A DNA stretch of 64,000 nt from Haplodiscus bocki (lineage: Eukaryota): NCBI GenBank assembly GCA_965655095.1, contig OZ296651.1, positions 117,490,001-117,554,000 on the forward strand. Direction: 5' to 3'. Below, one piece after another: positions 3,105-54,888 of this stretch. The translations under genes and the position numbers were made by a program. Positions within the stretch are counted from its first letter, which is position 1. Each line of letters starts with the position of its first letter. The notes below the pieces were generated by a model. That model was not told the origin of the DNA. It saw nothing but the letters and a program-made list of their open reading frames with translations, and searched no databases.

Positions 3105-3254
3105 TGGGAGCACGCAAACTTTTCAGACGCTCAATGAAATAAACGCCTGTCAAACTTCGGTGCAACACTGGAAAGTCAGTTGGCGCGCTGTCGCGCGCCG
3201 ATCGTCTCAACTAAAGCCCTATCCTTTAGGGGGGCGCACCCGTTGTCTAGGTGG
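3105..3254 (+). other. X-type right terminus: GC hairpin GGCGCGC-tgtc-GCGCGCC (3182-3199), second hairpin, then cacccgttgtCTAG-gtgg
   Basis: Near-identical to 16285-16432. A hairpin followed by CTRR is the established Helitron 3' signature. Confidence 0.75.
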
Positions 3255-3349
3255 GCGGGGGCCTTTCCCCCCTCTTATATTTGGGGCGACGGGTAGGGTC
3301 CTGTTGGCCCTCTTGTCGCTCATAGCTTACGCTTAAAAATCGTTTGACA

Positions 3350-3720
3350 AAAATCACGATCTCAGAGTTGGACCATACGATTCACCTCAAATTTTGCATG
3401 CGGCCACCAAATGATGATATAAGAAGAAGTCCCTGCTGACGTTTTTCGATTGAATCACTTTTTGTTGACCAAATTGACGATTTTTGGTCCCAAAATTGGT
3501 GTTTTTGCCCCTTTTTGACATTTTTTCGCTCATAACTTTTTGTGGGTGGCTCGGAGCGCTTCCGCACAGGACTGCAATATTGACGAGCGCTGTCTGGTGC
3601 GTGTGTAGAGGGGTCAGGTGTGGAAATTGGATGAAAAGTCTTGGAAAAATTGATGTTTTTTGTCGAATTTTTTGAATTTCGTTTTTGAGTCTCTGCCATT
3701 TTCGCTAAATTTTTTCAAAG
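3350..3720 (+). repeat. Conserved left subterminal block of unit A
   Basis: cgatctc...ccatacgatt...tcaaattttgcatg core is shared with 16539, 33518, 51552 and 53673. Confidence 0.7.
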
Positions 3721-4862
3721 TGACACTCACAGGGGGCAACCCCTGCCCAAATTTCCTCCCGCCAATTCCATTTGGCATGTTTGCAAGCATTTTTCATTTC
3801 GCAGGTACTTTGAAAAAGTTTTTGTCAATGAATAAATTATCACTGTATACATTGATCGAAGTTTTGTAATGGTTGAGAATGCGTTGCAGATCACCCATAT
3901 TGGTGTCAGGAGATAAGTGGGTCTTTCTGAAAGCAAAATCACGGCATGTTAGGAGGTTCGAGTTGGTTTATGGGTGAAACAACAGAAAAAATTACCTTTT
4001 TTTGCCAGTGTCACATGTTATATTTGATAAGGTTGACCGAAGTTTTAAAAAATTAGGTTACGTTACTTTTGTTAATAATTTGAATCAAATAGGGGAATTG
4101 GTGTAATTTTTGCTACCACATTGAATTAACCATGAAGTTTTAGAGGACAACAATATATTTTTTTCAGGTACGCTGAGCTATTGGACATCAGTCAATTGGA
4201 AAGAATCTTCAGTTTGTGAGACTATTTCTCCCATATTCCTAAACGAGCTCCAATCTTCTGGAGATCAACTGACAACTCTTTGTCTAGTGTTAATCGTTGC
4301 CTCAGGACATCAAAATCAAGTAGAACCAGTAAGAGAAGCGCTTGCAATTTTTTTTCAAAAACACGGATGTCTATAATTTAACATCCTAATTACCAAATTG
4401 TGTTAGGTGGCTGATACACTTGAGAGACCTTTCCTTGGCGAAGAACAACGACTTGACAATCACTCCAATAGATCTTTCCGAAAGAAAAATTATATTCCAC
4501 ACGTTTACATAAGTGCAGCGTTGATTGCCCCTGTATTTGTTTTAAAAAATTTTTCAAAGAAAAGTTCCAATGAAACCAAATTTTTTGTTTATTTATACCA
4601 CAAAAATTCAATTAGCCGAAGTTCCCATTAAGAGAGATCCGAAAAATTTTTCAGTGTAGAATATGACTTCTATGAACTGTACATGACTGTCGGAAGAATT
4701 TGACGTCATTGTTTTCAAGTTCAATTTCGGAAACGTCTAAAGGAATAAAAGTAAGTCCGAAACCTATTTTTGTCCGAGAAAACGCGTTAGTATTATGAAC
4801 ATCAGTGCTTTTTTGAGTAGGGCTCTGAAGATAACCTATCAATTGGCAAGACCATTGCCAAA

Positions 4863-7800
4863 ATGGTGAAGAAAAAGAGTCATACCACAAACAGGAAACG
4901 TAATGCCCGTGGACGATTCACGGGTAATCATGTTGACCCGAATGCGGAAACTGACGAAACTGATAATCGGGAACAACAAGTACCTGAGCAAAGTAGAAAC
5001 GATAACTTTTCGGGCTGTCAGGATGAGGCGCCTGTCGCAAGTCTTCAACCACAACGCGGCAAATGGGTTGACTCTACATCCAGTCACAGCTGGGAAACAC
5101 TCAGTGAGTTGGATGAGACTTTATTGTGTGATACTAGTAAATTAACTGCGAATTCTTTTGTTCACAATCCGTTGAGGTGCGAAAAGTGTCTCCGGGAGAC
5201 CACTGAGCAAATACCTCTCAATTTTTACCAAGTTGAACTAACTAGTAACAGCCGATCAAAGAAGTTTGGTGTACCCGTCGGAAATAGAAATTGTATAAAT
5301 GTCTGTAACGATTGCCGAGATTACATGTTACATTCCAGTCGAACTTTGAAATGGAGTTTTGCATGGGCTGCTGTTTTCTGTACCTTGTTGTTCTATGGGG
5401 CTACCTTTGAATGTAATGGTGAGTACTTCTACAATCTTTTGCCCACATCAGTTGCATTTTCTTGGTTGTCCGCTGCAATGGAAGCTAATTACAACATTGA
5501 CACCAAAATACCTTTATTCAATGATTTTTCAGCCATTCAGTCCGCATTCGCTAAATTAGTCGACGAAAAGAAAGCGACAAACTTACGCTACCAGTTCAAT
5601 TTTTTTAGCTTCCCTTTTGTTAAGTGCCCAGCTGGTTGTAATGTTCTGATTACCAACACTCGTTCAATAGATTTTTCTCACCTTTTGGCGAAGCTTTTTC
5701 CAAAACTCAAGCAAAGTAGCGGGAAGGCTCGATTTCTTACAGGAATGAGATCAGACTTTTTGAAATCAGTTCTTCATTTGGGCACTTTCATTTCATCTCC
5801 CTGCTTGAGCATCAATGAAAAAGGACTGCAGTTAGTCACCTGTTCCTTACATCTGAAAACATTGGTCAAAAAATTCATTCACCCAGCCACATCACCTTTA
5901 GGATCACTTTTGCATCCTCAATCTGATCGCTTCGCCCCAATTGCAACTAAACTTCGCTCTGGAACACCTTGCAAAATAGGAAATTTCTCAAACACATTCA
6001 CAATGGCAACTTCAATTGGAGGCTGTGGAGGCATAAGTTCTGTACAGCTCACAAAAAAACGGAATTTGAACGTGAAAAGTTCAATGCTGTTGCCTTCTTC
6101 GGAAACCCTAGTTGCCAACAACCGAATTGATGTTAGAAATCTTTTACGCAGATTAGTGGATCTTAGAGACATTGATGAGGATTTTTTTGAATTCATTCTT
6201 GAAGGTGAGTTTAATGTGGGTACTGAGGTTTTGGAAAAACACCTGTCTTCCTCTACACAAATGACACTTTTTTCGATGCTTTCAGTTGACAAAATCCTTA
6301 AAGAATCTGTTTGCAGCCGCTTGGTTGTACCTCCTAGTCTCACCATATGTCACAACACGATTTGCTTTGGCGCACCGCCTGTAATTCCCGCTTTTAAAAT
6401 TGGTAGAAATTTACCTCTCTGGATTACCACACTGTGGAATGTCAATTTTGAGTTTTTTGTGCATGTTCTTGCACATCATTGTAAAGATCAGGAAAGTTAT
6501 ATCAACTTCCTGAATGGTCAAATTTCGAGAAGCTCCACTTCAGTTGATGTGGGATTCACTGCTTTGAGGCGTGCTCTGGACATTACAACATCTGATGCAC
6601 AGACTCTGGGCGAGCTTGATTTCCTTCAGTTTCTTTTGCAAAAAATGCCTCACACTGAAAGTGTTCTTTTACAAAGGAGGTCGTCCATAGACAATATAAG
6701 GGACCAGGAAGCAGATGCATCAGTTTCCTGTTCTCAGGCTAAAGCGTTGGTCTTGTTGTGCCCTCAACCACCATCCCGTCCCCAATACTTCCCTTTAAAC
6801 TTCTCTGCGTACGGAAATTCGTATCAATTGGTTTCTCTTATTTGCAACAATGAACTGGCTTTCATGCGTTACGGTGGACCATTTGTGGGTTGGTGGCAAC
6901 TGAATCCCAAACAGAAACTTATGTACAAGGCTGACAATCCCATGCAAAATGAGAAAGTAGTAAAATCTTGGAAAATTTTGCTTTTTCTCAGCGCCTACCA
7001 AGATGAATTGACGAAGGATGCCAAAACTCTCTTTTTTTCTGGTCAGGACTCAATTTATTGTGAAGAGCACGACAAACCGTTGTCGGTGGACTACGTCGCT
7101 TCTGCCTACAAATGCAGTATCGAGAAATGCAAACGGAAAGCTAAATGGAGATGTCCTGTAGACTTTTGTTTTAGCTGTTGTTGTGAGGCGCACTTCAAAG
7201 AATTTAAGCAGAGCTTGGAGCGCAGGTATATTGTACCAATTGAACCCAACTATGATGATGTTCCGGATTTCAGTTTTCCATTGGACACTGACTCTACGCA
7301 AATGACTTCAGAATCGGAAAACAGTGAGGAAGAATACGAATATCATGGATTAAATGAGACCGGGCTCTTCCATGAGCCTCTACTGGAAACAGAGTCAACG
7401 CCATACCAAACATTAGTAGCCGAAAACTGCCACGAGGCAGTTCCACTTCATGTCTTGTTGAATCAAGCGCTTCAAGTTTTCAAAAGGGCTCAGAAACCCA
7501 AATCGTTGTCAAGGAAATTTTTGCGTTTCTTTCAAAACTTCTCAGCATCTAATCCTAATGATGTAGTTTCACTCCTTCAAGCCGAGGCCCTTTTAGCACC
7601 CAGCATTTTCTATAAACAATTCGACGACGGAAGTTTTTGTGGTGCCCTACCCTACTTTATGATGAATGATGATATTTTTAACAACAAGTTGAATTTTGCA
7701 AGCTTTTACGACCACCTCGTAGCCAGAATTACCAACCTCGAATTACCAGTTTCGTCGAACATAAAATACTTATTCTTCTTAACAGATGTATTGTTGAATA

Positions 7801-10800
7801 TTAGCCTCCATAAAACTGTATCTACAAAATTTTTTAAACGAGGAGTTCAGAACATAGAAATACGGGGCCAAAAAATGGAATGTCTAAACATCAACAGCTT
7901 CAAATATAGTTTAGTTGACTCGGAAAGAAACGTGAAAGAATTGTCCGGAGCGATGCAGTTTGAGACACCCAAAGTTTTTTTAACACTTACTTTAAATCAA
8001 AAGGAACATTTTGGTGTAGCACCTATAGTGGAAGCAATCGAAAAAAAGTTCCCAGATCGAACGTCTGAATGCTATAGAGCAGCAATGCAGTCCTATATGC
8101 CTTTACTTCTTCAAGTTTGGAACCTCACAGCCAGCCATTTACTCCATTATTTGATTGAATCACCAGAGAAGCTGCTAGGAGAAGTGAGTAACGTTTGGGG
8201 TCGCTCTGAATTTCAGTCATCTGCGGGAAACTTTCCACATTACCATTTCTTATTTTGGTTGAAAACTACTATCGATGACCTGACAAATGTAGTAGCTTCC
8301 ACGAAAAAACATCTTTTTGACGTTTTAAAAAAAGTGTTTCATTCAAACCTGGGTGTTATCAAAAGCATCAATGACTTGAACGACTTGTTTGACAAATTTG
8401 TAACAATCCAAACACACGACTGTGATAAGGGCAACCGGCGTTGTTTCAAAAAACGGGACTCTGAAGGCAATCTTATTTGTCGGTTCCCTCCGTACACACC
8501 TTCCAATTTTATTTGGTTAAAAGAGATACCTCAAATTTTTTCCCCAGAAGCTGCTGTGGTTCTGAAAAAAATGGGTTTCATCTTGAACTTGACAGATGAT
8601 TGTGAGGTAGTTGCACCAGAAATGCAATGTTATAAGTACTCATAAGCAGCGTCAAAGGGCGATCACATAATGCCGAATTCACCTGCACTTTTTGCTTTAA
8701 CCTTGTCAAGCGGAAACGTTCTTTTCATCACATCACTTTTCAGTTCCAAGTATCTGAACAAATACGCAGCTGGTAAGGAGGAGCACTCAGAAGTTTTCAT
8801 CAAATCAGCAAAAAGTAGCAACACAATCGAGTTACAATCCCAAGGGATTCAAAATCGAAAAATTACAGGTGTTGAAATAAAATTACAGGAGGAACGTCGA
8901 ACGAAGAGATCTGTGAGTGGCATAAGTGGACTTACGGTTTCGCAAACTGAGTTTCTATGGTGGAGCTTGAAACTGCCTTCAATAATAACTACATTCGACT
9001 TCATACATGTTTCATCTGTTCCATTGGAGTACAGACGTGCGCAATTAATTGAACTGAAAAACGTAAATTTTATAGTTGAGGACCTACTGAATGTGAGAGA
9101 AAAGCTCCATCTTCCGAGTTTTGCATTTTTCACTTCCAATCAAAAACACTTAATAGCAGATAACGCGGCGTCAATTTTGAGCTGTGATAATACTATTGCT
9201 TTTTCCTTGCGACCTCCGGAGCTTTTGTGTATAGACACAATGAAACTCTTCTATTCAAGTTTTGTTAAAGGACGTACTTTCCGGAACATAGTAAGTCTGA
9301 AATTGGAATTGCTTAAAAAGCCTCGTCCTTGGATTGATGGGCGAAACGCCCTGATCCAGCTTCGGCCTGCAGCGGTAAACACAGTTAAATGTTTTCTTCA
9401 GGATAAGATCAATCAGAGGCTGTTCAATCACCGTGAAGTTAACTTACTATACGTAATTAACCATTTGAATGACCAGAACTTCAAGGAAACCTATGTTTCA
9501 CAAAATGCAAAACTATCGAAGACACCGGCGATTGTAGTTTTTTCTCAAGTGTTTCCCAGGAGTGCTTTGAAGTTTCTCCTGCATCTTTTGTATTCTATGG
9601 GTAGCTTCCACACTGAATTTGAACTTTTTTCGTCAACATCGCTCCGTCAGTGTTTTATCGGAGCCAAAATTTTACCAGAAGGTGCATGTCAAGAGGTTCA
9701 TGCACTAGATTTACTGAAACGATACGTAAAGGAACAACTCATTTTCTTACCAGGGGGCAATATATCGTTCTCCAACCGTCTTGTAGCAGCATTTGACGCC
9801 ATTGTGAGTATGACTGTTCACGATAACATTTGTTCGGCTCCTTTTCCGTGTATTTTGATGCAGAATCTAACAGAAAAAACTGAAGAAATGATTTACTCCA
9901 AGCTTGAAGAAACAAAAGAGCAAATTTTCCAGCAACTGAAACCTGCAAATGTCACCAACGTGCCTACAGTAATCAACAAGAACCCAGCGGTCTGTTGGAT
10001 ACCCCAGCTGATCCAACTGCCGCAACAAAGCAGCCGCTCTTATCATGAACAATGTTGCGTTCTGGATGCTATCATTCAGACAATTTTGAAATACGTTAGT
10101 CGTGGAACACAATGTACTGTCAGGCACCAATTAGTTCTAGGGAAGCCCGGCTCCGGAAAGAGTCATGTTTGTTCAATAGGTCTTCTTTTTGCACTCAACA
10201 ACGGCCTCAACTGCTACGTCACCAGTTTAGCAGCAAGGCGATCATCACATTTCAGCTGCGACCACATTCATCGTCTGTTCTGCATCGGTATTAATTCAAA
10301 AGATGACGCGTCTTCAGCTGCTGAGAAAGCGGTGAAAAAAATCAGCGAGAAGCCTTTGAAAAGAGCTGTTTTACTTTCCTTAGACGTTTTGCTAATAGAA
10401 GAGATTGGACTGATAAGTTCGGAATTGTTGGCGACAATCGATATTGTCCTTCAACAGGTTCGAGACTCACCAAAATCGTTCGGCGGTGTTCTGATTCTTG
10501 CTAACGGGGACACGAACCAGTTGCCTTCAATAACTGGCTCTGATGTCTTTATGAGTCCAAATCTGCTATTTTCTTTCGACTGCCACTTTTTGAAGTTTTT
10601 CGTTCGTATGCACGACATTCTAGGACAACATATTCTTGATTGCATGTCCTTGAAACCAATATTAACAGACGATATACAAAACATAGTTGAAGTGTTGTCA
10701 CGTGAATGCTCATTTGTTGATACCTGGGACGAAGTGACAGACTCCACTGTCATGAAAGTGTTTGGGAAAAAAGAAGCTGAGCGTCTGGCGGTCTCTGAGT

Positions 10801-11987
10801 ATCAAAGTAAAATAGCACGCCAAGGACAGCCATTTGTAGAATTTATTGCAGAAGACGAAATGTGTCCGCAGTATGCTAATACTTGGAAAACCGCCACACC
10901 AGATGTGCAAAAATACCTCGACAACGAATGCAGAGAACCACGAAAGCTCGTTTTGCACGAAAACTGTGTCTTGAAACTGACAGTAAATCTAGAACAGTTG
11001 TCACAAGGGCAGTTGTGTATCTTAGCTCGAATGCCTAATCCTTCTGATAGTTCAATTTTGATTTATGTTGCTCCCACTGTAGAAGCGTTTTCACAAGAGA
11101 ATCTGATTCGTGATCGTTTGTTTACACGCTGGCCAACAAAAAGAGTACCGAAGGTCACTGGTTTCACTCATGGAATGGGCAATGTTTCTGTGCGGCGCAG
11201 ACAGTTGCCTTTCGTGAATTATGTGTCTGGAACATGTCACAAACTAATGGGCGACACATTCTCCAAAATTGCCACACAAGTGTCTGTCACTGAAAGAAAG
11301 TACAACCTCTGGATAGCGTCGCAGCTTTATGTGATACTTAGTCGTGTTCACAAGTTGAAAAACGTCACTTTCGTCGGCGAAAAGTTAGTTCATGTGTGAA
11401 AACTACGATTTTGTGTAAAAAAACCTCAAGGTTCCAGTCTCTAAAACAATTTTATCTTTCAAAACAGGGAAGAATCGTTGGCGGCCATACGAACGATTTT
11501 GAGTCGAACGACAAAGCATGAAATACAAGTACAAAACAGGTTCCGGCTTCTACAGCAATATCGCGCTGTGGAAGGGTTTCCAATTGTCATTCCCGAACTG
11601 CTAATGACCCCCGTCAGGGTGGATATTCCAGTCGTTCTAAATGGATTTGTCTACCTTCTTGTTAGTCTGCGTGACAAATCATACCAAACGTGTTTTGTGG
11701 GAGAAACAAAAAGAAACTTGTTGGAAGAGTTGGGGGAGCACAATGCCGGAGGTAACACGTTTTTGACGTCGAAGCCACATTTTCGGCCGTGGTCACTGGC
11801 TGCCTTCGTTACAAATTTTTCATGTGACGAGGACAGATTTAATTTGAAAGCAGAGATGGAAACTAGTAATTTTCTGAAACTCCGCATCGACACGATGATG
11901 GATCACCTTCAAAATCTGTGTCGCTCTGGAAATTTCGGCAGTAACAATTTCTTCAAATGTGGAAATTTGATTCACATACCACAGTGA
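4863..11987 (+). pseudogene. RepHel (HUH Rep + PIF1-like helicase) with C-terminal GIY-YIG exon; one in-frame TAA (8643-8645) and one intron (11384-11467)
   Basis: Rep motifs VFLTLT, EFQ...PHYH and YLNKY. Helicase motifs GKPGSGKS, LLIEEIG, GDTNQLP and QLYVILSRV. ORFs 4863-8645 and 8670-11399 are in the same frame, and the stop aligns with Tyr of KHHY in B/C. 11478-11987 has GFVYLL...FVGET...EHN...RPW. Confidence 0.9.
11384..11467 (+). other. Predicted 84-nt phase-2 spliceosomal intron between helicase and GIY-YIG
   Basis: GTTAGT donor and aacAG acceptor. Splicing gives FVGEKEESLAAI, collinear with FVGTREANKKAI in the intronless unit C. Confidence 0.8.
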
Positions 11988-12399
11988 AAGTTGCTAAATT
12001 TGACTTTGTGTAAAATTCGTAAGTATAATCGAAAGTAAAATTTAAAAAGCGACTGATGTTTATTGGCTGTATCTCACTATTCGGAAAATGTTAATTTAGA
12101 AATTTACGCGATACTTTGACATTTGAGTCGTTAACAAGCAAGTGCCATAAGCGATGAAAGACGTCTTTTAAAATTCTTCAATGATCCGCCGTATTCTGTT
12201 TGTCACTAAAAAAGTCTCTCGGTTGTTGCAGTAAAATTATGTAAAGTCTGAATATCGATTGTATTTCCTGAAAGTTTGCTTCCATTCTCTTGGAGTTCAT
12301 TTTTGTAATAAAATTACGTTATTTATACTTTCTAAAAGTTGTTTTGGTGAAGTTGTGAGCTTCCCCGTGGCTTCATTTTCAGTTTCCATTTTGCGTTCC

Positions 12400-13419
12400 A
12401 TGTCGACTATTTCAGTGGCAATGAACGCTGGGTATATGAAAATTGAGAAACCCTTGAATGAACTGCTTCATCAAGTACAACTGAAGTTTTCAGAATTGCC
12501 ATTCAAAGATTTGATATCAGATGAACGACCGCTTCCGACTAGATAAAAACTAAAATGTGTGTTTTTGTATTGTTGCCCAGCAACAAAGAAAATCAACATA
12601 TACAAGCCACAAAAAGGGGCCTTTAAGATCCGCCATCAGGAAGTAGCCAAGTACGATAGATTCGTCATTCTAGGAGTAGAGGGCACTCAACACGTTCTTC
12701 TTTGCTTCACTAGCAATGGCGATGAAACAAAGAGGTTCCTAAATTACAAAGATGTGTTAATGCCAGGAACCGCCGTTTGGCTAATTAGCCCCAAGGTTGT
12801 TGGGTATTTGAAAAATACTCAGACACCGTTAATATCAACCGGTGATCCTATACTTCCATGTGAAAGGGGAGCTGTACTAAGGAACCCACCGTGCGATGTT
12901 GGAAATCCCAGCTACGTCTTCTTTGATTTTGAAGCCACAAACTTACGTATTCAACAGGCTGTCCCCAAAGACAACGTTTGCCAGGGAAAACTCTGTGACG
13001 CTCAAGGAGATCCGAATGCATGCCCCTGCATTTCGGCTCAGTCTGGGAAGCACTGGGCTTTGACTGTGACCTTCACTTGTGACCAGCTTTCTGAAAATGT
13101 CACTGGTGAAAAATATGTTACAGTTACATCAAACCAATTGACTAAAACATTTATTCACCTTGATAAACGTTCTGAAAAACTCGTCGATGACAATTTGGAC
13201 CCCTATGACATGGAAGATGCGGTGATAGCTTTAGCCAATTCCATTGATGCTTCACAGAAGTTCCGCGTGATTGGTTGGTTCAAGCCAGCACAAGATGATG
13301 AGGGTGTAGCTTCTGGACACTTCTCCTATCACGTTTGTTCGCTGTTTCCCAAGTCGCCATTAACAACTGCTCAATCTTTGCTTTTATACGGTGCCCCGCA
13401 ACCGGTAACACAAAATTGA
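12400..13419 (+). pseudogene. Accessory ORF2 (~339 aa, putative OB-fold/Zn protein) with in-frame TAA at 12544-12546
   Basis: ATG 12400 is in frame with ORF 12559-13419. Homologous to 54889-55920: YDRFVILG/YDRLIIIG, CQGKLCD..CPC/CSGFLCD..CAC, FRVIGWFK/WRVSGFYK. Confidence 0.75.
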
Positions 13420-13830
13420 GGAATGTCTGTAATCTCAGCCTCAACCCTGCAAATTACAGTCGTATTGAGGAAGCAAGAATCAAGTAATTGCAAAACAAAA
13501 CGTAATTCATGAGGACTATTCCGATTCGTTGAATTCAAAAACATCTTTGTAGTTGTTGGAAAACACTGTTATAGTTGTTGAAGAAAACTGTTACCGTTGT
13601 ATTATCGTCACTTGTTACAAAAACCATTATCAGCTTGATGATAAGTAAATTTGAAGAAACAATGCATCAAAATGCGATTACAATTATATATCATTACTGT
13701 TGAACCCTTAACAGAACTTGTACAAATGAGCAACACTTTTTTACCACTTCTTCTTTTGTGAGTTTTCAAAACACTACAACACAAGGACTGTTCAAAAGTA
13801 AAGTGGCTTTAAGAATTTAACGAAAAGTTG

Positions 13831-13868
13831 CAATGCTCTGGCTGCCAAAAAGGGCAGCCAGAGCATTG
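13831..13868. repeat. Perfect 16-bp inverted repeat with 6-nt loop
   Basis: caatgctctggctgcc-aaaaag-ggcagccagagcattg. Confidence 0.95.
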
Positions 13869-15255: not shown

Positions 15256-15535
15256 TTGCGTTTGTTATGTCTGCTAGAAGCAGCATACTTCAAACGCGCG
15301 AGGTTGCGTTTGTTACGTCTGCTAGAAGCAGCAAACTTGAAACGTGCGAGGTTGCGTTTATGTCTGCTAGAAGCAGCATACTTGAAGCCCGTGAGGTTTA
15401 TTTGTTATGTCTGCTAGAAGCAGCTTACATGAGACCTCCGAGGTTGCGGTTGATATGACTGTTAGAAGCAGCATACATGAGACCTCAGAGGTGGCATTTG
15501 GCTTGTCTACCAGAAGGATCATTTGTGAGACGTGT
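15256..15535. repeat. Minisatellite, ~45-48-bp unit, ~6 decaying copies
   Basis: Unit ttgcgtttgttatgtctgctagaagcagcatactt.aa.c..gagg, with internal ctgct-aga-agcag palindrome. Confidence 0.9.
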
Positions 15536-16284: not shown

Positions 16285-16432
16285 GGAAGCACGCAAACCT
16301 TTCATACGTTCAATGAATTAAACACATGTCACATCTTAAATCAACACTCGAAAGTCCGTTGGCGCGCTGTCGCGCGCCGATCGTCTCAACTAAAGCCCCA
16401 CCTGTTTTTGGGCTCACCCGTTGTCTAGGTGG
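16285..16432 (+). other. X-type right terminus of unit A (hairpin 16361-16378, CTAG 16425-16428)
   Basis: Near-identical to 3105-3254. Confidence 0.75.
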
Positions 16433-16534
16433 TCACGCTCTTAAGCCCCACAAAACAGTATTGCGAGGCGGGGGAGGGGCCCTGTGCCGAGCTTCATAAA
16501 TCAAGTTTACACCTAACCGGACCCCCCCGAAAAG

Positions 16535-33412: not shown

Positions 33413-33514
33413 TGGGATTGCGCCCGTCATTGGGCCTTTCCGAGGCGGGGGAGGGGCCCCTTTGCCGAGGTGTAATATATAGAGAAAGACCCTATGCAGA
33501 CATGTGCTGCGTAC

Positions 33515-45500: not shown

Positions 45501-47622
45501 AAGCAATATCATCAACAATTTTGCCGTCTCTCACCCATTGGCGAATCAGAGTTTTAATATCGTCTCTGAAACAGCAAGAAATTCCTTCCGCCTGATACAA
45601 GATATCGCTAGTGATGTCCCAACGTGTTTTTCGCTTCAACCGCACTGTACTTATGCCACTGTAAGAACCGATACTTTTCAGTAACTGGTATGTATGACTG
45701 GCGAAATTCGCTTTGATGTTTGTTATCCAGGAAATTGTCGGAGCTACCACACTCAAACGCTCCTCGTGGAGTAGAGCTGTTCGTGTTAAAGAAGGATGGG
45801 AAGGAGGGTGAATGTAATGAACGGAGGACCCCTTTGAGTGCATGGAGCAAGCATGAACTATCAATCCTTCCGACTTGTCCACTCTCAATGTTGCTGCAAC
45901 TAAGAATCGTCGCAGTGATAATGTAGGTACCAAGAAATCCGATCGCATCCCGCGCAGATGCAAGTGGCTAGAAGCTTGAAAAGATGTAAACTCCGGGTAA
46001 AATAGGTTCAAAAAGTGTTTGGCTGCAATGAATCCTACTTCTTCAATGAAACACCAGCAACCGAAAGGGCACCTGACGTTGGGGTAAGGTTCCTCATCTA
46101 AAGCAAGTGCGATGCTTTCCTGCTCCAAACCTTTCAATAGTTGTTGAAAACGACGCAATCGAAGGGTTCCATCAACAGCACATTTGCCCTGGATTCTGCT
46201 TTTGTTCAGATATTGCTGCACACTAGATGAAAAACATCCAATAGATCCCAGCCATTGCTGCCTTATTTCCACAGGCAATATTGCCAAAATGTTTATCTGT
46301 GTTTCTCTGGTTAATTTTATATCACTTAAGAGTGTGAAAAACACAGAAGGCCATGCCTCATTCCAGTCAATGCGCTCGAATGTGCAATAACATAAACACA
46401 AATTACATAGATAGACAAGGGATTCTCGAAGTCGATTTCCGAACATTCTGTTCTTCAGTTCTGATTTCTTTTTGCTAACCAGCTTGAATGGATGATGGAG
46501 TGTTGGTTTTCGCATGCATTTTTGGCAGTAGTCAATATTGTCCGGAACAGAACTTTTGTCATGCGTTTCTCTATTGCTTTTATCAGTGCCTGACACACTG
46601 GAAGCAGAATTGTGAAGGTTCATCCATTCTGGTGAATGATTTCCCGTCATTTTCTTTCTGCCCTCAGTCGAAGAAGGGGAGAATGGCGGGTTGTAGTTGC
46701 AAGTTGCGGTGACACTAATGTGAGGCGAAGACACTTCTGGCATTGGAGAATGTGTTTCAAAAGTGTTAGCATCAGTAGTACTGAGCTTCGTTTTTTTCGT
46801 AGCTGGTTCTTCTGCTGTACCCTGAAGAGCTCTCAGTAACTGAGTCTCAGCTGCACAAATCCTCGAAGAGAATTCCAAGGAAGAGTTAACCATTGAAGCT
46901 CTTGGCGGACACACAATTTCATCAATTCTAATCGAAAAGAGCTCATTGACTACTTCAAAGTGATTTGCACTCCTAGTTTGTTGAATGAAAATGCCTCGCC
47001 TGTCTGTATTCAAACAACATTCATATATCAACCAAGATTTCAAAGGCACATGGTATAAATAAACGTCAACTGAAAAAACTTGACAGAAAGTATAAATTTC
47101 TACGCAAGTCCCAAAAACACCATTTTCGCCCATTTTCGAAACACGGAGGTACTCGTCAACAGAAGCACAAGTCAAAATACGATGCTGATTGGGAAAATCG
47201 TCCGAGTGAATTACAGTTTGCAGGCTATTAGGGGGGAAATTGATCAAGTTCATGTTTGCAACAATTACATTTCGTATATTTTCACCACAATCCTGCATCA
47301 GACCGAGAGCAACAGCCAAAGCAGTAAAAAGGCAATTACCGTCACCAAGAATTGGAGTGACGTTCGCCGGGCGCAAAGAAGAAATGAAGCAATCATTTGG
47401 GATTGTACTTTGGTGATTCAAGAGAAAGTCACTCAACTCCAAATTAGCCAGGGAATGCAAAATATCTTTTCTTCGGGCAGGTGACACGGATATGGCAGTG
47501 TCTGGAATTTTGTATAACACACCTAAAGGCTCGTCAGCTTGAAGTTCTGTTTCAATATCTTTGACACATTCATGGTTCTTACCAGCAAATTGTCCACAAG
47601 CAATGCAACGTCGCCGCTTCAT
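39571..47622 (-). CDS. Intact Zn knuckle-OTU-Cys-rich-HUH Rep-PIF1-like helicase-GIY-YIG protein (2683 aa)
   Basis: CIACGQF..HEC; GDGNCLF...NHFEVV (OTU); YFVTYT, YEWQ..PHLH, YAAKY (Rep); GPPGSGKT, FIEEMSM, GDFFQLPP, TIHKTMG, QLYVVMSRV (helicase); FCYLLQS..LYIGST..RRAREHN..PW..GF..FEKEW (GIY-YIG). Confidence 0.95.
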   Translation of the reverse strand: MKRRRCIACGQFAGKNHECVKDIETELQADEPLGVLYKIPDTAISVSPARRKDILHSLANLELSDFLLNHQSTIPNDCFISSLRPANVTPILGDGNCLFTALAVALGLMQDCGENIRNVIVANMNLINFPPNSLQTVIHSDDFPNQHRILTCASVDEYLRVSKMGENGVFGTCVEIYTFCQVFSVDVYLYHVPLKSWLIYECCLNTDRRGIFIQQTRSANHFEVVNELFSIRIDEIVCPPRASMVNSSLEFSSRICAAETQLLRALQGTAEEPATKKTKLSTTDANTFETHSPMPEVSSPHISVTATCNYNPPFSPSSTEGRKKMTGNHSPEWMNLHNSASSVSGTDKSNRETHDKSSVPDNIDYCQKCMRKPTLHHPFKLVSKKKSELKNRMFGNRLRESLVYLCNLCLCYCTFERIDWNEAWPSVFFTLLSDIKLTRETQINILAILPVEIRQQWLGSIGCFSSSVQQYLNKSRIQGKCAVDGTLRLRRFQQLLKGLEQESIALALDEEPYPNVRCPFGCWCFIEEVGFIAAKHFLNLFYPEFTSFQASSHLHLRGMRSDFLVPTLSLRRFLVAATLRVDKSEGLIVHACSMHSKGSSVHYIHPPSHPSLTRTALLHEERLSVVAPTISWITNIKANFASHTYQLLKSIGSYSGISTVRLKRKTRWDITSDILYQAEGISCCFRDDIKTLIRQWVRDGKIVDDIASGMLQYQPQMANVTSCLLHSSSTDLETCVEVAKIVDKCEKQYLNYVEALSCYSFAQGTDDFGCSPPPLNNNCNNVLWLVQAATCLSPLMCRLLVNSPKYPVTLKPLFCLLRNVFISPTTMRNANSTILLRRSEESIKKLLQQCQSEDEASTSAQCCCVLGAKFLEMCCDSIRHIPLLERKAITCASNLEFPDVTTHAIFTTTSVNNLRNRNEPPLSFVVSGQEYELIAMGSKDAGPKNEPRWLVRHGKDFQRFWIIEKNSKFARKTDGNPTEAIQSAFRGYWTIAIFEKTRNVDLADLKWQFLSTLTGQGVFICQKHDLPLTRDFRKSTFRCRCGLCSFLRCPYFQCHSCICKSHFKEGLKETNKRVLINAAPCPKEEIMELSSESDSSVSTNPRSGPKRFCNMPFFESTDPEVAAETIDFVTSSNSSLIDELLPGKNDDDFIDENLKYMGKVKPCQDSKALSVQRSCKEENFKLPLHILLNSQCNLLYRRKGNPISLTLKEKRFVENIAAISTSSLPLVQPEALLFPSIFWSQSKNGSFHGAIPAALYNSSKYNKQLGFAGLEDMLRTRIKDGSLLTSCNAAYLQYVLDCLLSTQLHKTDVRIVLNRGWQEVSSAPSNSRFVSTETFKFDCAESRKNVCELAALIREKNPTYFVTYTCGQSTHPGIRKIFEALHELYPEDTTAKEVLSAAIQAELMPMLRCWYRASQYVMEWIKKSPERPLGPVSHIWLRYEWQEETAGFPHLHAILCTPEDKFSNDVRSRICCSKETFLGALEISCPTLTKGDRLMLADLFQKYQVHNCTKGRKRCHKKTDRLNQPICRVPKYPASQCFSFKEVPINFSAETWDLLQELGLADIDENTLTPKAKAPLVGGKHHYPTVSNEHFSPTNAALFALTQSSTNVQICDDYMAPRYAAKYAAGIESRAAANILAGEAEDSVKVLTQPLENEKIAGVQATINKKLRDYEKQNAITGRIVSITECLWWCLQLPYVCTNVDFVHVPTVPKEYRSGIVKEKHNNKLKFSTTFDEAVRVRRQVLQLPKYRQFTESQVLLLADVETSFVTPDKVTLFGLRPPELNFISTLSVYYSWFARCKSQIERVKSNHELFVKKNIRKTFWVDATGYVIKLRPAAVESFINVCRLKGSNERNEKLKNEMRKNVVPVLRSRNNSQFVAHWKSLSNETAVVVYSNILPNNPTKFLLHLLLTLGDFITEIDILNVQSFKDAFVAANVVPSCVNEMTVKTVTRKYLLEQLRFTPGSSKLIEKYLLMAHGVLSEALLRNNLYFAAALPPALDIKVMEESDEALTLQLVLEKSKMVAFLHTCQTQLPNEPTMLDSTVNAPVPWKPKIQKSPDQCKNSYLEQCRTLDRLMLSIDKYKRRLCFFIRHQVVFGPPGSGKTFVMLKSLAYALCQGLHCVVTSLAAERSAALAGRHLNALIPFPVEKSSSAESLAKTALSNLQRSPVKTRFLQNVDVFFIEEMSMISSEIWAATDHVLQVITSNYVPFGGKLVIATGDFFQLPPPSGSYLMSSSFPLTTFAFHNLKNFVRMQNKNGQELLSLMSSVPKTDANAKRIWEIIEKSCNFVESWSDVPSDSIRIFATRQAERKATENKITDVKNSGTQYYEHMAVDEMCLSSTENWTEASTTTSNFLNKKCLEPGSLFLYPGAILRLTVNKPSIQAYQGQLCVLVSMDSIENGSVTVALAPAGCRTIPPLSVMTNTWRCVVINKEIGVTIRLNHKTVCRRIQFPLKLFVASTIHKTMGETLPMVATQIVGSREFSLWLPEQLYVVMSRVRNLSHVTFVGTREANKKAILDLTRKKSQWSELTNEILTKSCTKDASIDLAKASPFPPSVQELPTQALGFCYLLQSVPQKNVLYIGSTMSLVRRAREHNAGLGSAFTRVPTRMPWIVCAYVTGFDWTNAGQRIRLFEKEWLDAASLYVNVKKSNVSLPTAISLAENIARTWAHREDNLKVVVCSNQSNAF

Positions 47623-47909
47623 ATTTCAAAAATTGTCATAAGGAGCCAGTGACAACTTAACAGAAGGTCATGATCATGTCATTCCATATCTATTTGAAAA
47701 AGAAACGAGTGGTTCAAACTGGCGCAACACGTTTTTTAAACAATTTATTTCCCTAATACACAAGCGGGAAAATACCTGACAGAAAAAAATTCTCTATGAA
47801 TACATTCATACTGCAACTCAACTTCAGTGAAGGGATTAAATCATCCGAGCAAACACCCAACAAAACTGAGAAAAAATAGCATATCGAACGAAATGCATAA
47901 ATCCTTTCA

Positions 47910-47947
47910 GCCTTGGTTTTGTGAGGGCTACTGAGCAAAACCAAGGC
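47910..47947. promoter_or_regulatory. Inverted repeat GCCTTGGTTTTGT-N12-GCAAAACCAAGGC upstream of RepHel C
   Basis: Same arms as 30090-30127 with an unrelated 12-nt spacer. Confidence 0.6.
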
Positions 47948-50900
47948 GGTCAGTGATCTCATGAATTTCTACTCTAAGAGACAGATCGTTTTATCTAGCT
48001 ACAGATGTTCCCATAACAACTTGTTCTAGTGGAAAAAAAGTGAAGACCAAGGAAATGTCAATGCAAAAACGTGTTCAGCAATTAGTTGGAGAAAAAAACA
48101 GCTAAATGTATTTTTTTTTCAAAAACAACAGGACTTAATAAATGTTCACCATCGTACACGAGTAAAATCTCAATAAATCACACACGATAAACTGGAAATT
48201 AAAAAGAACATTTCTTTGTACAGGAAAACTTTGGTTGCGTAAATCCACTTGATTGTTACTTTATTTTTGCAAAAACTGTTATAATCAAAATGAAAGGGCT
48301 TAACCAACGCAAAAAAACTACCTAAGTAGTTTACATTGCTGAGAAAAATCATGTTTCATCAAACAAGTTATTTTGGAATTTCGTTTCACATCTTTTGAGA
48401 TGTCGGAAATCAGAAGACAAACAAGTGGTTTTTGTTGACGTAAAAAGCCACAAAAGACATGCAAATAACAGCACAACTTCTGCAGAGAGACACAAAACCA
48501 GTATTGACGAAACCCTGATCAAATTCATACATCTGCAAAAAGTCAGAGAACAGTCCCCATTTTTGAGCTATGTACAATGCCCACTTGGCTTTTTTATGAA
48601 ACAAGAAACACTCCTATTCGTTTCTTCGGCTTTAGGACAATCTGGATATTTTAATCGAGCAAAAAGTAGATTCATCAGTTGTTGTGAGGCATAACAATGT
48701 TCATGTTATGCAGTGCAATCATCCAAACAGTTGAGGTGCTAATTCATTTTCCGCATACTTTCATCTGAGATCATTCCGCTCCTATTGAGGTGTACATTCA
48801 GTTATCGTTGAGGGAACGCTAACAGAAAAACGTAATGGAAATGTTATTTTATAGAAAACTACAAAAATTGAGAACCAAAGAACAAAATTGACAAAGAAAA
48901 AAAAGGATCGAAAATTAGTCTTTGGGTATATGGAAAACACCGCGGACTACAGAAGTTATCCGATAAAACATATGGGAGTCTTTAGATGAAACTTTTTGAT
49001 TACTCTAACCAAACTGCGCAACACAAGTAGCAGTTAGGACATGCTGGCCTGCCGTTTTTTTCTGAAAAATGCAACGTGAAAAAGGCATCGTTTAACTAAA
49101 AGGAAACACACTGCAACAACAAGTAGCCAAAAAATTCATTCGTCATCAGTACTCTATCGTGAAATTCAAGTACTATTTCTCCGTTGGGAAGTCGAATCAT
49201 CAATTGAAACAACATATTTGCTCTTGCCAATTGATTGATTATGGCTGATAAACCAGTGATGAAACGCAATTATGTGACACCAGCCTAGAGAAAACATAAA
49301 TTCAACACAATCAACAAATGTCAGGCAAAGAGATTTCAAAAGAAGCACTTTGGAGAAAAATTTGTTCATCAGTTGCTCTGCTGAAGAAAATAAACGGAGA
49401 TCTGTGAATAAACGCTGCAAAACAGTCAGAATAAAATTTAAAAGGCGATGTCGTTTTAGGTGAATTGATCTTTTACCTAAACCAACCCAATGATAGAATA
49501 TGGTAGGGATTAAAAAATCGGCATTTATTATAGAAACACACCAAAGATATTGGTATTGTACAAATTGCTACATCCTAACCAAAAATCATATTATGATATG
49601 AAGAAGAAAACACCGGGATTTTGCATTTACCCCACCTCTATTTTTCGACCTGCTACCAATTTCAAAAATGATGACAATCTTTCTGACAATCGAAACATCG
49701 AGTTGAATCCAAAAAAAATCCAAATAAACCAACCCAAAGAACCTGGTGTTGTTCTGCAGCTGGAGAATAACAAAACACAGTTTCCTGAAGCATGCTGATT
49801 GGATTCAAAAATCATTCAAGATGATGCACTTGTACTTAGGTGAAATTTGGCCAAATATATGGAATTAAATGAAAGGTCCTCAAATTTTCCTGACGATTTG
49901 GACAAATTAACAGTACTTTTAACAATTCCAAGAGGGTTCCAAACTCGCGAGAAGCACCACACAAAATTACTGCAATGTGTGTAGTTGACGTGTGGCAAGC
50001 CTCGAGTTTTTCAAATGACCTTTGCTAATTAACAATGGAAACTTCGAAATACCAAAAAACTTGTGAAAAGAGCGTCCGAATCAACGGGACGGATGAAGCA
50101 GTAGATGGTGTCCGGAATCCAAAGGAAATTAGTAGGAAACGAAATAAATGGCAGAAATAGAAGCATCGGGTCTGAAACGCAGCGAATACGGGTAGCATGT
50201 TACTGCAGCACCTGCATTCATTTTTGTATATTTGGTCAATGCGTGTACTGAAACTCGGTCAAGCAAACTGGCCAAAAGTTATTCCAATGTCTGACATTAA
50301 AAAACTCACTGACGCTGCAGGGTAGTCATCATGCAGTGGCCTGTTAAATCGAAAACACTTCAGAGCAAAGACGAAATGTAAAATCAAAGCCCAGACAAAA
50401 CGCAATCTGAGATTTTGGAACACCGTTTTTAACGTTTTTCATCCTGCATGAACAAAGTCCACTTCTTGTGGCATTGTTGAAAGCAATCAGTTGGGAAATT
50501 TGAGACTGCTTGCGAAAAGAAGCAATTGTCGAAGAACAAGATCCAGTAGTAAGGACTACCATAAAATGAAATTGAAGCAATTCTTAAGTGAAGCAATGTT
50601 TTCGTATTGAATGTGTTTCATACCTGACAGACTAATTCACAATTTTTTGGCAGTTGGTCTACCGACTGAGTCATATAGGCGTCGAATCTGTCATGTTACG
50701 TACAGCTACAGGCAAAACAGAACGATTTAGGTCCACTCTACATAGAAAATCACTGGAAAACGGAATGAAGCTTAAAGGAGGGGAAAAGTGACAGAACGAA
50801 CTTTCTCCTAATAGCCTATGTTCCTCACAGGCAGACTCATAGGCAACTGCAAAAACATGATAAAAAAGCACGACGGAGCACCTTCCCTGCAGAGGAATTA

Positions 50901-51403
50901 ACACATCAACACTCCAATGCACGTGAAATTGCTATAAAGTCTGAGCTTTTATACAACAACCACAGAAAAAAACTGTGCCTATATATCATGCCATTTTACT
51001 AAAAGTTGACAGAAAATATTGTAAACTTTCTTGAAAACAGATGGGACTGTTAACGGCCCAGGGTGAAAACTTATTTTGAGAAAAATACATTTACTTGAAG
51101 GCACTTCACCGTTGTGGCATCCTTGTAGCAAAGTTTTACTACACTGAGGGTGTAACACTTACTGAATTAATGGCGAAAAACGTAATTCCACAAAGTAAGC
51201 AAATTGACACTTTGGTATGACACACTTTTCCCAAAAAAAACAACGACAACCTATCCCAGAAAGATTCAGCAGTTTATAATGATCAAAGGCCGACGGAAAA
51301 GACGTTAGGCATAAACAAAAAAAACATTTGCAGAGAAAACATGCCCAGAATTGGCAATCCAATTGTTCTCTGGACTTTGGATCCGATAAAAAATCCTTGT
51401 AAT

Positions 51404-51447
51404 GCCGCCATCTGGTAAATTTCGCCGTCGCCTCCACTGGGTGGTCA
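51404..51447 (+). other. Y-type right terminus of unit C (..ccgtcgcctccaCTGG-gtggtca)
   Basis: Matches 33369-33412. CTGG at 51437-51440. Confidence 0.65.
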
Positions 51448-53620
51448 GGGATGTAACCTTCTTAGAATCCGAGGCCGGGTAGGGTCCCGCTGCCGAGGTT
51501 AAAAAATAATCGATAAATTTTCATCATACCGCATGGTAGGTCTGGGAAGCCGATCTCGGGTCCTACCCGATAGAATTTATTCATATATTGCATGCGGTCC
51601 TAAAATGGCGAGGTTAGAAAGGGGAAGAGGGAAAAAACTTTTTCCATTCACAACGTGATGAGTTATGACGGAATGATAGTGTTTTTTGCCCCAAATTTGA
51701 ATTCTCATCGGTCTAGTTCCACATCTACCCGATACAATTGGCCCAAATTTTGTGTGTGAGGCACAAATGATTTCAACAATTTGCATGCCAAAAATTTTTG
51801 GCCCAGCCCTTTTCGTTCGGGAAATAGGCGCTGATGAATTTTTAGATTTTTGCAAAAAATGCGTCATTCCGTCAATTTTGATCGCCAAAAACAACTATTT
51901 CTCGTGCGCTAGCCTTCGCGAAGGGAGCCAAAACTGAACCGGCAATTGATTTTGATTCGCCAAAAATTTTCGGCCAAAATGCCGAAAAAAAATGACGGAT
52001 ATGACGGGAAGAAAATGACGGAAATGACGGATTTTTTTTCAAAAAAAAAATTTTTTTTTTCGGAAATGTTCTTTTTTTTGCGCGTAGAATGCGCCTAACA
52101 ATGTTACACAGTCTCTAGACCAGTGATTGTTGACAGTTTGACCGTAGTATACCTCGTATGAGATGTTTTTTTTTGGGAAACACAATTTTGAACTGGTTAG
52201 GCATTACTGATGTAACCTACCATTTTTTCATTCATACATTTTTTTCGCATTAAGTACAATGTCATACATATTTTAAATCTTGGATCAGAGCTCTCTGTTG
52301 GTTGTAGAATGTAAAAGGTGCTTCCAATACGTGTCATGCCTTTTGAAAATATAAAAAAAAATTGGCAATTTTTTGCATTCAATTTCAATTATTTTTGCAA
52401 GAAATTTTGAGTTTGTTGTATTATTGTTCTCAGCAAATTAGACGTTCTTTCGTTTTCCCTGTCAAGTTTGTTCGTAGAAACTAGCAGTGTATGTTTTTTT
52501 CAGGGTTGCATTGCATGAGTTGAACTTCTTTTTGGGCAGTGTACGTTGGAGTGTGTTATGTATTTGTTAAACGTTGCAGTGCCTTACGTATTTGTTAACT
52601 GGTTGGACAGTTTATAGTTGGCGTTCAACAAGAATTACTTTGGCAATCGACAAAATTTACATGGGGACTACATTTACGCATGAGGTTGTTTTGTTTGGTG
52701 TCCAACCCCAACACTCCTCAGTCTGTTATGGTTTTGAAACGTTTTTAACTAATCGTTTTTTTTCAACTACTCAAAGTCTTGCTGAAATCAGCTATGCATG
52801 GTAGCTTCGCCAGTAAAAGGGAAGTCTAGAATGAAAAGGTTAATAAATTAATCGATGAAGTTCATATATTTATTTGACTGAATAATTTGAATTCAATTGT
52901 TCCAATCCGAATGAAAAGTATGTATTTGGGTCAGTTTTCATCTTTACATAGGCTATCCTCTGAGATTTTGGAATTCTTTTCCACAGACTGCTTCGGTGTA
53001 ATGCATCTGGCTTTTCAAAACTTTTCCTCCACTGAATTTTGTAGATGTAGGCTCTGCCACTGAGTGTTTGTACAAAATCTTGACGAATCCCTTTTTCAGA
53101 AAATGGTGTACTCAGTTTGTTTCACTTTGTTGATGATTTGCTCTTGCTCATCGACCGTTTTGGGAAAAGATGGACTTCTTCCTGTGAACAATGTTGGACA
53201 AGTCTCCAGCTCAGACGTCACCGTTGGGGAATTTTATGTTTCGGTGTTTCTTCATGATCAGTTGCAGTTCTTGAGGACCGCTAATTCTGGTGATGTTTCG
53301 ATGACTCGCCGAATGTTACTTCTGTTTCTCTTGAGGAGTGGTATAGAAACTAATCCTGGTCCGCCGAAAAAAAAAGAAATTTTGCAGAGAGCCCAGGAAG
53401 TGCGTAACGTGTGGGCGTTTCTATGGCAGCAAGGACTGCTCTTGTTTCCATTCATGCATTGAAAGAGCCTCAGCTGGTGAAGACTATATTGATCGGTCGC
53501 TGTCTTCTGCGCCTTTCAATAACCTGAGTCTTTTCTCGAACGTGCCGAATTCAAAAGCTTTTTCCTGCGCAAACGCTAATTTGACGAGAATTTGCATTGA
53601 TTTTGGAATCGAATTAAGAA
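51448..53620 (+). mobile_element. Unit D: left part of another element, RepHel start on + strand, truncated at 53620
   Basis: Junction cgggtagggtcc as in A, subterminal block at 51550-52040, and an N-terminal Zn knuckle homologous to B/C RepHel. Confidence 0.7.
53103..53620 (+). pseudogene. Hydrophobic leader + 2A-like GIETNPGP + RepHel N-terminus (frameshift in A9 run 53367-53375), truncated
   Basis: Removing one A gives NPGPPKKKKFCREPRKCVTCGRFYGSKDCSC...LSLFSNVPNS, resembling RRRCAKCGRFSERNHSC...LGILYSIADS of B. Confidence 0.65.
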
Positions 53621-54888
53621 CCGAGCTTCATAAATCAAGTTTACACCTAACCGGACCCCCCCGAAAAGGAGACGATCTCGAAACCTAACCATACGATTTC
53701 GATCAAACTTTGCATGTGGATAGAGTCTGCCGATGTATGAAGATTTTTGGCACTTACATCATTTTCTTTTTTTTCGTTGGGGAGATATGACGCAATGATC
53801 CTGTTTTTTGGCAGGTTTCGATGTATTTTTCGCAATATCTCCACACTTTAACCATAGCATTGGACTCAAATTTTTTCTGTGAAGCACAATTGTTGTGGAC
53901 TACCTACATGCCAAAAGTTTTTGGCCAGGGCCTTTTGCCCTAGGAGATATGACCTTTCAAAGTTGTCAAAAATAGGCCAAAATCGACCAATTTGTCATTT
54001 CTCCCACGTTGATGTTAAAAAAGTGATGTGAGCTTTCGTCACAACGTGACGGGACCTGTGTCAAATGAAAAAAAAATTTCCGACAAAAAAACAGTTTTGG
54101 TCAAATTGCCGAAAATAATGACGGCTATGACGATTTTTTGTGGAGGAAAAAAAACAGGTAAAAAGTCAGTTTCTCCTCTACTTCATCTGAAATCCGTCAA
54201 CTTTTTGAAGACGGGAATGAAGCTTTGCTGAAATTTCATACTCAACTATTAGGCTGGGAAACTGTCGGTAACACAAGTTTTAACTTGGGCCAATTCAAGG
54301 AAACTCGCTGCAGTTTTTTTCTTTCAATTCCAAATTATTTGTAATAGAAATTATGAAGATTATGTTATAGTTATACATAACTGTAGCAACTTTTTTTTGT
54401 CTCAGCGGACATTGAATTAGATTTGAGGTGACTAGTTACAAGGAGCTGCACAAACTTTTTTCTGAATGACCCATTGAATTTTTAATGAACATTATACGTA
54501 CCAACAACAGAAAACAACTTAAACTGTGCTAAATAAAGTTCACTAGTAATACAAAGTGAAATCTCAGTTTAACTGCAAATGAATGGTAGCAACACTTGAA
54601 AATTCAATTGAATGCACGTAGAAAAAATGCACTTCATGACAACTCTCTTTTTCTTAAACGACTATTGATCTTTTAATTTTGGGCAAACACCTTACGGTCG
54701 AATGCCTTGTGACAGTCGATGTTGCATGCAAACAACTTTCGGTAGCTTGCTGAATGATTCACTGCACCTTGTTTTAATTGTCTCTAATACCTGTGTTGAG
54801 CCTGTACTTAATTTGTAACTGTAGTAAAAACTATCACAACAGTGATTGATATAAGATTTGTTTGAGTTTTGTTGGTTCAATGAAGTGT

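Follow-up and report, generated by a model that had tools for sequence, protein, structure and literature searches.

Helitrons are thought to insert almost anywhere in a genome, between A and T or between T and T, and their tandem arrays are ascribed to missed terminators or to concatemers. Reports from bats, maize, silkworm, fungi and cnidarians describe Helitrons in tandem, unrelated Helitrons side by side and, now and then, self-insertion close to one end, including the 5' end (PMC4067079, PMC5148889, PMC11934779). The tandem Helitrons of bat, maize, silkworm and Fusarium/Metarhizium are sporadic or confined to a single family, and are explained in one of these two ways. This study concerns a 64,000-nt window of the genome of Haplodiscus bocki (GenBank assembly GCA_965655095.1, contig OZ296651.1, positions 117,490,001 to 117,554,000 of the forward strand). 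Its DNA is eukaryotic, with a G+C content of 36-44%, and all of it consists of large repeated units, which were delimited by self-comparison and open reading frame (ORF) scans and are called 0, A, B, C, D and B' in the order of their occurrence. The units are Helitron-like as judged from their predicted proteins. In contrast to the tandem Helitrons described before, every end examined here lies in a joint between two units, members of different families adjoin one another, and the nucleotide at which they join never varies; full-text searches of the literature yielded no description of Helitron-like elements with ends always in joints and an invariant joining nucleotide. These elements probably integrate site-specifically, and in one orientation, into existing joints between a right end and a left end, CTRG^GTGG (the caret marks the break). 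With somewhat less confidence, the lineage is regarded as an obligate integrator into its own end-to-end joint, in which diverged families would share a structured target (about 8 nt and a hairpin) and so build long, mixed, safe-haven arrays, the equivalent among eukaryotic rolling-circle elements of the cassette arrays of integrons.

The window contains four joints of one layout, all on the forward strand: J1 at 3247..3254 (break 3250/3251), where unit 0 meets A through CTAG^GTGG; J2 at 16425..16432 (break 16428/16429), where A meets B through the same sequence; J3 at 33402..33409 (break 33405/33406), where B meets C through CTGG^GGGG; and J4 at 51437..51444 (break 51440/51441), where C meets D through CTGG^GTGG. 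In each of them, a family-specific right end closing with CTRG is followed by G(T/G)GG, which opens a conserved left end of about 230 nt. The exact sequence CTRGGKGGKC is found in the 64 kb only at 3247, 16425, 33402 and 51437, that is, at the four joints. The G-rich motif CGAGGCSGGGNAGGGNCC occurs three times against 0.10 expected, the remaining joint, J1, having a diverged form, and the subterminal block CATACGATT..TCAAAnTTTGCATG occurs four times against none expected, each time 120-130 nt to the right of a joint. A left-end profile search of the window revealed five copies, all on the forward strand. Four of them are complete and come straight after a right end; the one at 53621 begins at profile position 55. 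The motif counts and the profile search bear out the claim of the first-pass annotation that four junctions share one layout. The sole CTRGGKGG outside the joints, at 27999, is located within the Rep-PIF1 ORF of unit B and is unoccupied.

The fifth profile match marks a broken boundary, J5 (53609..53621, break 53620/53621, forward strand), at which the interior of D meets B' at left-end position 58 (CCGAGC...). It departs from the joint layout, having neither CTRG nor leader, and B' begins 57 nt inside its left end. Read contigs show loose ends at 53609 and 53621. Since the break is also present in a second version of the locus (L112, described below), it must be old, and it is best read as a deletion of the remainder of D together with 57 nt. 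A 94-nt tRNA-Glu predicted by ARAGORN across J5 (53605-53698, reverse strand) is absent from the identical sequence of B and is almost certainly spurious.

The joints are modular. Between units 0 and A, the X-type right ends agree at 85% over 151 nt, with divergence starting just after CTAGGTGG, and the Y-type right ends of B and C are 73% alike; the left half of a joint follows the upstream unit, as had been proposed. The companion claim that the right half follows the downstream unit was not only borne out but strengthened by leaders that recur behind differing right ends. The 57-nt leader of B (GTGGTCACGCTCTTAAG...GGGGGAGGGGCCC..TGTG) is near-identical whether it follows the X-type end at J2 or, in another assembly, a Y-type end (L002:157), and a D-type leader was found behind three unrelated upstream sequences. 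In the reads of four runs, other copies of B carry the usual B leader too, and the same right-end core precedes other left ends. Two further joints involve incomplete upstream units: in L006, a unit without its last 430 nt joins via an internal CTCG straight to an intact GTGGTCA, and in L106 an internal CTGG, 35 nt short of the true end, is joined to an intact GTGGTCA. Together with the leaders found in differing contexts, these internal joints place the boundary at CTNG^GTGG to within 1 nt, and the use of an internal CTCG or CTGG of the upstream unit indicates CTNG^G specificity. On this evidence, all sequence from GTGG onward is assigned to the downstream unit.

Loci outside the window were reached through relatives of the unit C protein on long contigs of public metagenome assemblies, from which 22 loci were fetched. 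The census of joints covered about 0.4-0.5 Mb, namely the window and 13 contigs from four other assemblies, and is therefore a local sample. It comprises 41 distinct joint contexts, all of them CTNG^GKG and 39 at true right ends, and each of the 33 distinct right-end cores is followed by the start of a left end. Left ends are co-oriented within every locus and no inverted neighbour occurs among the 41 joints, in agreement with the fixed polarity that had been predicted. No full end abutting non-element DNA was found in the window and the 13 contigs; the prediction that the units join other elements fits the lack of any solo, host-flanked copy among the 41 joints and 33 right ends. Two independent exceptions, at window position 53621 (shared by L112) and near position 9933 of L001, are truncated left ends lying against the interior of an element, and are most simply read as the result of a deletion that took away what was left of the upstream unit along with 25-57 nt from the start of the one after it. 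The arrays mix autonomous units of 15-18 kb with runs of non-coding units of 1.0-1.4 kb whose ends are identical in type. In the reads of the four runs, end blocks are found at about 50-100 times the depth of unique DNA, a depth that is not to be taken as copy number. A scan of JGI metagenomes with a 17-nt core returned 95 stretches, two of which are real (L014 and L074, both short contigs) and the rest chance matches in bacterial DNA, and a scan of viral contigs gave no match.

The most direct evidence for insertion at joints comes from the D family, copies of which, 15,006 bp long and 99.7-99.94% identical, are present on at least seven contigs. The right end of D is followed by at least five left-end types, and at least four different right ends precede its left end. 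Neighbours of D that belong to the same type are 84-91% alike between loci, as against 99.8% for the D copies themselves, which rules out co-mobilisation of D with its neighbours. At one locus (L115), a run of seven 1.43-kb units, 86.6-92.8% alike (one pair 99.8%), is split exactly at one joint by a single 15,006-bp copy of D, with zero bases gained or lost. The upstream joint reads ..GCCTCCAGCGCTAG^GTGGTCAGGG.. and the downstream joint ..CCTCCACTGG^GTGGTCCGGAACG..; judged by these identities, L115 represents a young element within an older array. The second case is L112, a second version of the window locus, in which 11.4 kb of C match the window at 99.6% identity, D does so at 99.0%, and the J5 break recurs. 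It contains an additional 1,052-bp unit exactly between the CTGG of C and the GTGG of D, at the place of window J4. The first-pass annotation had proposed that elements insert precisely at one another's termini, and had suggested that versions of the locus be compared for precise gain or loss of whole units; the former is supported by the D copy in the L115 joint and by the L112 difference, and the latter is seen as the one 1,052-bp unit, gain and loss being equally possible. Its view that the neighbours are too diverged for simple read-through concatemers also held in a self-comparison of the window.

Three times, a D-type unit is immediately preceded by a mini unit whose left end is of the B type (11401-12452 and 14633-15627 on the reverse strand of L112; 885-1941 in L113). 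As these mini units share only 84% identity from one contig to another, the pairing is not due to co-transfer; it may reflect a preference for certain joints.

Several points weigh against site-specific integration. Recombination is at work in these arrays, as seen from the duplicates B and B', 98.2% identical and about 37 kb apart, from the homogeneous runs of mini units (1.0-1.4 kb), and from L112, which has a mini-B where the window has the full-length B', behind the same J5 break. The difference between the window and L112 at J4 is equally explicable as a precise loss through the direct repeats of 18-45 nt that successive joints have in common, which are sufficient for it, and the likeness of the D copies could in principle be kept by gene conversion. 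Retrieval by protein biases this local sample towards arrays, and no array edge with host DNA was found in the window and the 13 contigs. The empty CTRGGKGG at 27999 indicates that the 8-mer alone is insufficient as a target and that there is some further requirement. For most single sequences, the energies of the left-end hairpin are not better than those of shuffles. Finally, no circle, nick or strand transfer has been observed.

The signs of recombination would all be accommodated by a scenario without any target specificity, in which rolling-circle concatemers and read-through composites were shuffled by unequal crossing-over, gene conversion and deletion at the joint cores. This scenario is nevertheless unlikely. 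It does not readily account for a 15-kb D copy, 99.7-99.9% identical to others, at an exact joint within a run of units 87-93% alike, or for D neighbours that differ by locus and are much less alike than D. Where two families have nothing but CTRG^GTGG in common, recombination would find hardly any homology at the joint, and shuffling has to be reconciled with zero inverted neighbours in 41 joints.

Slightly less probable still is a short target like those of IS91 and IS608, whereby elements would insert 3' of any CTRG, their own right end supplying one, and hop locally without recognition of a joint or a left end. CTRG is indeed the sole invariant of the right side, and two joints follow an internal CTCG or CTGG instead of the true end. 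However, CTRG is met every 128 nt or so, yet a true right end is used in 39 of the 41 joints and non-element DNA in none of them; the 430 nt absent from the truncated unit of L006 were not found downstream, where insertion into that unit would put them; and the internal CTRGGKGG at 27999 is empty. That the arrays are an assembly artefact, with repeats collapsed or wrongly chained, is highly improbable: short-read contigs do end at joints, none spanning a joint of the window, but five independent assemblies, with long contigs of 26 to 900 kb among them, show the same joint architecture, and 11.4 kb of C, the joint and D recur in L112 at 99.0-99.6% identity.

The coding capacity of the units is that of rolling-circle transposons. 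Rep contains motif 1 (TYFxTYTC), the HUH motif FPH(L/I/V)HA(L/I) and the two-tyrosine motif RY(A/V)AKYAAG, all of which are kept in C, B, L001, L002, L005 and L006; in unit A, Rep is degenerate after HUH. These motifs identify it as a Y2 HUH enzyme of the Helitron kind, although a very diverged one. Pfam Helitron_like_N was matched with E values of 1e-4 to 1e-7, mostly just under the cut-off, and a feature search returned Helitron_like_N clusters. The helicase, fused downstream of Rep, matches Pfam PIF1 (E 1e-10 to 1e-13) and PIF1 chains in PDB (E 5.6e-13), and the Helraiser structure 7lcc was matched through the helicase only. For the GIY-YIG domain, the nearest solved relatives are SLX1 nucleases. 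Units B and B' hold the same genes as C, in pieces, on the reverse strand. No match to DUF6570 or APE was obtained in the element proteins at E up to 1. The earlier assignment of the units as Helitron-like agrees with Rep motif 1, HUH, YxxKY and the PIF1 helicase, and from their predicted products they are classed as Rep-Hel rolling-circle transposons, Helitron-like in the broad sense.

The left end of a unit opens with GTGG(TC). Two hairpins were considered in it. The first, terminal one is weak, with an energy not above shuffles. The second lies about 35-60 nt in and consists of a GGG(G)/CCC(C) upper stem, a purine-rich NAGGGN loop and a lower stem that differs by family (GGC/GCC, GGATTC/GAATCC, GCCGC/GCGGC, GGAGC/GCTCC, GCGGCC/GGCCGC or GGTT/AACC). 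In single-sequence folds, it was obtained for 13 of 15 left ends. A test for covariation with a MAFFT alignment and RNAalifold recovered only the invariant GGG/CCC pairs, because bulge sizes differ. The hairpin is followed by the conserved block of about 230 nt, with the sequence CGATCTC..CCATACGATTT..TCAAACTTTGCATG. The possibility that this block is a multicopy RNA gene of the host that attracts insertions was rejected, as it has no Rfam match and ARAGORN reports only the spurious tRNA-Glu at J5. Clusters of ATGACGG (two to four copies spaced by 8-15 nt) occur about 540 nt inside the left ends of B (16985-17005), C (33960-33985), D (51975-52035) and B' (54117-54137), and single TTATGACGG motifs about 210 nt inside the same four left ends; both motifs could serve as binding sites of the iteron kind or as promoter elements.

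The right end is family-specific, CTRG being its sole universal feature. In X-type right ends, a strong GC palindrome of 18 nt precedes the end by about 47 nt, and there is none in Y-type ends. Terminal inverted repeats were not detected: when the first 80 nt of a unit were compared with its last 80 nt, the best inverted match was at shuffle level in 10 of 11 units. The right-end CTRG resembles the 3' CTRR of Helitrons, if it is the forward strand that moves. Of the two ends, the one with GTGG is richer in hairpins and better conserved, and B, C, L001 and L002, which make up most of the autonomous families, code on the opposite strand; the hairpins at the GTGG end and the coding strand of these families would fit a moving reverse strand.

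Canonical Helitrons (HLE1; Helraiser) have in common with these units a two-tyrosine HUH Rep fused to a PIF1-type helicase, a 3'-like CTRR end (CTAG or CTGG here), the lack of target-site duplication, non-autonomous derivatives with shared ends, and the use of cryptic end-like sites. They differ in beginning with 5' TC, where the left end here is G(T/G)G(G/C), and in inserting between A and T of host DNA, where 41 of 41 joints here lie between G and G of two elements. Their palindrome of 16-20 nt is about 11 nt before the 3' end, whereas only the X-type ends have a strong one here and at about 47 nt, and the Rep of the units described here is very diverged, with OTU and GIY-YIG domains added. 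Helentron/Helitron2 elements (HLE2) are likewise large, with OTU and an added nuclease, and have abundant short non-autonomous derivatives with tandem repeats; they also have hairpins near the 3' end, a likeness that exists only if the reverse strand of the window moves. A coding region in either orientation relative to the ends is known for Helentrons and for Fusarium Helitrons (PMC4067079, PMC5148889), and a GIY-YIG domain has been noted once, in the moss HLE2 family HelenSM92 (PMC11417382). Unlike the present units, HLE2 elements have (sub)terminal inverted repeats of 12-16 nt and a target between T and T, carry DUF6570 (a proposed marker) and, in Helentrons, APE instead of an SLX1-like GIY-YIG, and do not have ends that always abut other elements. 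From this comparison, the ends appear to fit neither canonical Helitrons nor Helentron/Helitron2.

Among prokaryotic elements, IS91/ISCR and IS200/IS605 likewise employ HUH chemistry on single strands, have subterminal hairpins, are cleaved at a distance and leave no duplication; a short specific sequence beside one of their ends serves as the target and must be present once more for another round. In the present case, the element's own end would supply that target sequence, whereas for IS91/ISCR and IS200/IS605, which have no fused helicase or nuclease, the targets (GTTC/CTTG, TTAC) are in host DNA, hence no mixed arrays form. The idea of a cassette-like array, also put forward at first, stands as far as a polar array of units at joints is concerned; the likeness to integrons is an analogy only. 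Integron cassettes likewise form polar arrays of unrelated units, inserted as circles and site-specifically at a structured single-strand site, but their recombinase is a tyrosine recombinase encoded outside the cassettes and acts at one insertion point, attI, whereas here each autonomous unit has its own HUH enzyme and any joint appears usable.

Integration into a joint might proceed as follows. As in other Helitrons, the donor would most likely be a circle in which the two ends are joined. The two-tyrosine HUH Rep would nick the resident joint with the specificity that it uses for the start and end of its own transfer, and would exchange strands with the donor joint, so that the donor opens at its joint and lands between two resident units. 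Such an insertion would be seamless and polar, without bases gained or lost, and would regenerate two joints. PIF1 would unwind the DNA, and the SLX1-like GIY-YIG nuclease may cut the second strand or resolve a branched intermediate; the set of Rep, PIF1 and SLX1-like GIY-YIG makes a plausible toolkit for integration of this kind. A role for the left-end hairpin, and the identity of the moving strand, are presumptive parts of the model. Homologous recombination, deletion and local duplication afterwards remodel the arrays.

If integration at joints is correct, a eukaryotic HUH transposase can be strictly site-specific, and large mixed arrays of transposons can grow without harm to host genes. 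The elements would then represent a natural system for seamless and orientation-specific DNA integration, with a target (CTRG^GTGG and the hairpin) short enough for oligonucleotide tests. They would also have a third kind of Helitron-like end structure, one that present annotation tools do not search for; what these tools expect is either TC..CTRR or a T^T target together with inverted repeats.

All units of the window lie on the forward strand as judged by their ends. Unit 0 (1..3250) is cut by the window start, is non-coding and is related to unit A: in self-comparison, 1-224 matches 3901-4124 at 80% and 3105-3254 matches 16284-16432 at 85%. Its X-type right end closes with CTAG at 3247-3250, preceded by the GC hairpin GGCGCGC-TGTC-GCGCGCC at 3182-3199. 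Unit A (3251..16428; 13,178 bp) has its left end at 3251-3475 and an X-type right end that closes with CTAG, with a hairpin at 16361-16378. Its degenerate Rep ORF (4863-8645) and its PIF1 ORF (8670-11399) are both on the forward strand, reading from the left end to the right end. Unit 0 contains a 549-bp tandem duplication (2018-3115; copies 71-75% identical) and unit A at least five 48-nt tandem repeats (15213-15547); the repeats of both sit just upstream of the X-type right end, like those of satellite-carrying Helentron-derived elements.

Unit B (16429..33405; 16,977 bp) starts with a left end at 16429-16661 that takes in the 57-nt leader and the NAGGGN hairpin, and closes with the Y-type right end ..GCCTCCACTGG. 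On its reverse strand are an OTU gene (29048-29935), the Rep-PIF1 ORF (22487-28687) and an ORF of 200 aa (21797-22399), the last in the place where the B' copy carries the GIY-YIG ORF. Unit C (33406..51440; 18,035 bp), with its left end at 33406-33637 and a Y-type right end, has a single intact ORF of 2,683 aa on the reverse strand (39571-47622), which encodes OTU (a weak match), Rep, PIF1 and a C-terminal SLX1-like GIY-YIG. Unit B' (53621..64000) runs off the window end and carries, on the reverse strand, an accessory ORF (54889-55920), a GIY-YIG ORF (58925-60019) and a PIF1 ORF (60034-62766). The identity between B and B' extends over 9.9 kb at an offset of about 37,130 bp (16487-27227 against 53621-64000), which suggests a block duplication or an unequal exchange inside the array. 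The alignment has a 345-bp indel at 26397/26742, beyond which identity falls to 92%.

Unit D (51441..53620) is a 2.18-kb left fragment of a D-type autonomous element, cut off at 53620; its identity to the 15-kb L006 family is about 79%. The fragment contains the left end, the ATGACGG repeats and the start of a forward-strand polyprotein. Near the start of such D-type polyproteins there are 2A-like ribosome-skipping motifs, ..GIETNPGP and ..GLELNPGP (window 53330-53372; L103 18240-18270), a type of motif that is unusual in a DNA transposon. The accessory ORF of B' belongs to a conserved type of about 340 aa with no Pfam match (also L001 7420-8433 and L002 14586-15596), which in units of the B, C and L001 types is located at a distance of 1.3-2.5 kb from the left end. 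In D-type units, the accessory ORFs are different ones, of 217 and 330 aa.

Three related families with OTU, Rep, PIF1 and GIY-YIG, at 43-53% protein identity to C (L003 10001-24850; L004 10001-25980; L005 10001-18349), have no GTGG left end and no CTRG joints, and would provide a useful outgroup. L003 and L004 have long tandem repeats of about 52 nt after the gene. The gene calls P0004 and P0005, from these two loci, include two in-frame TGA codons read as W within the last 100 codons or so, which is probably a choice of code by the gene caller on a metagenome contig and not real recoding.

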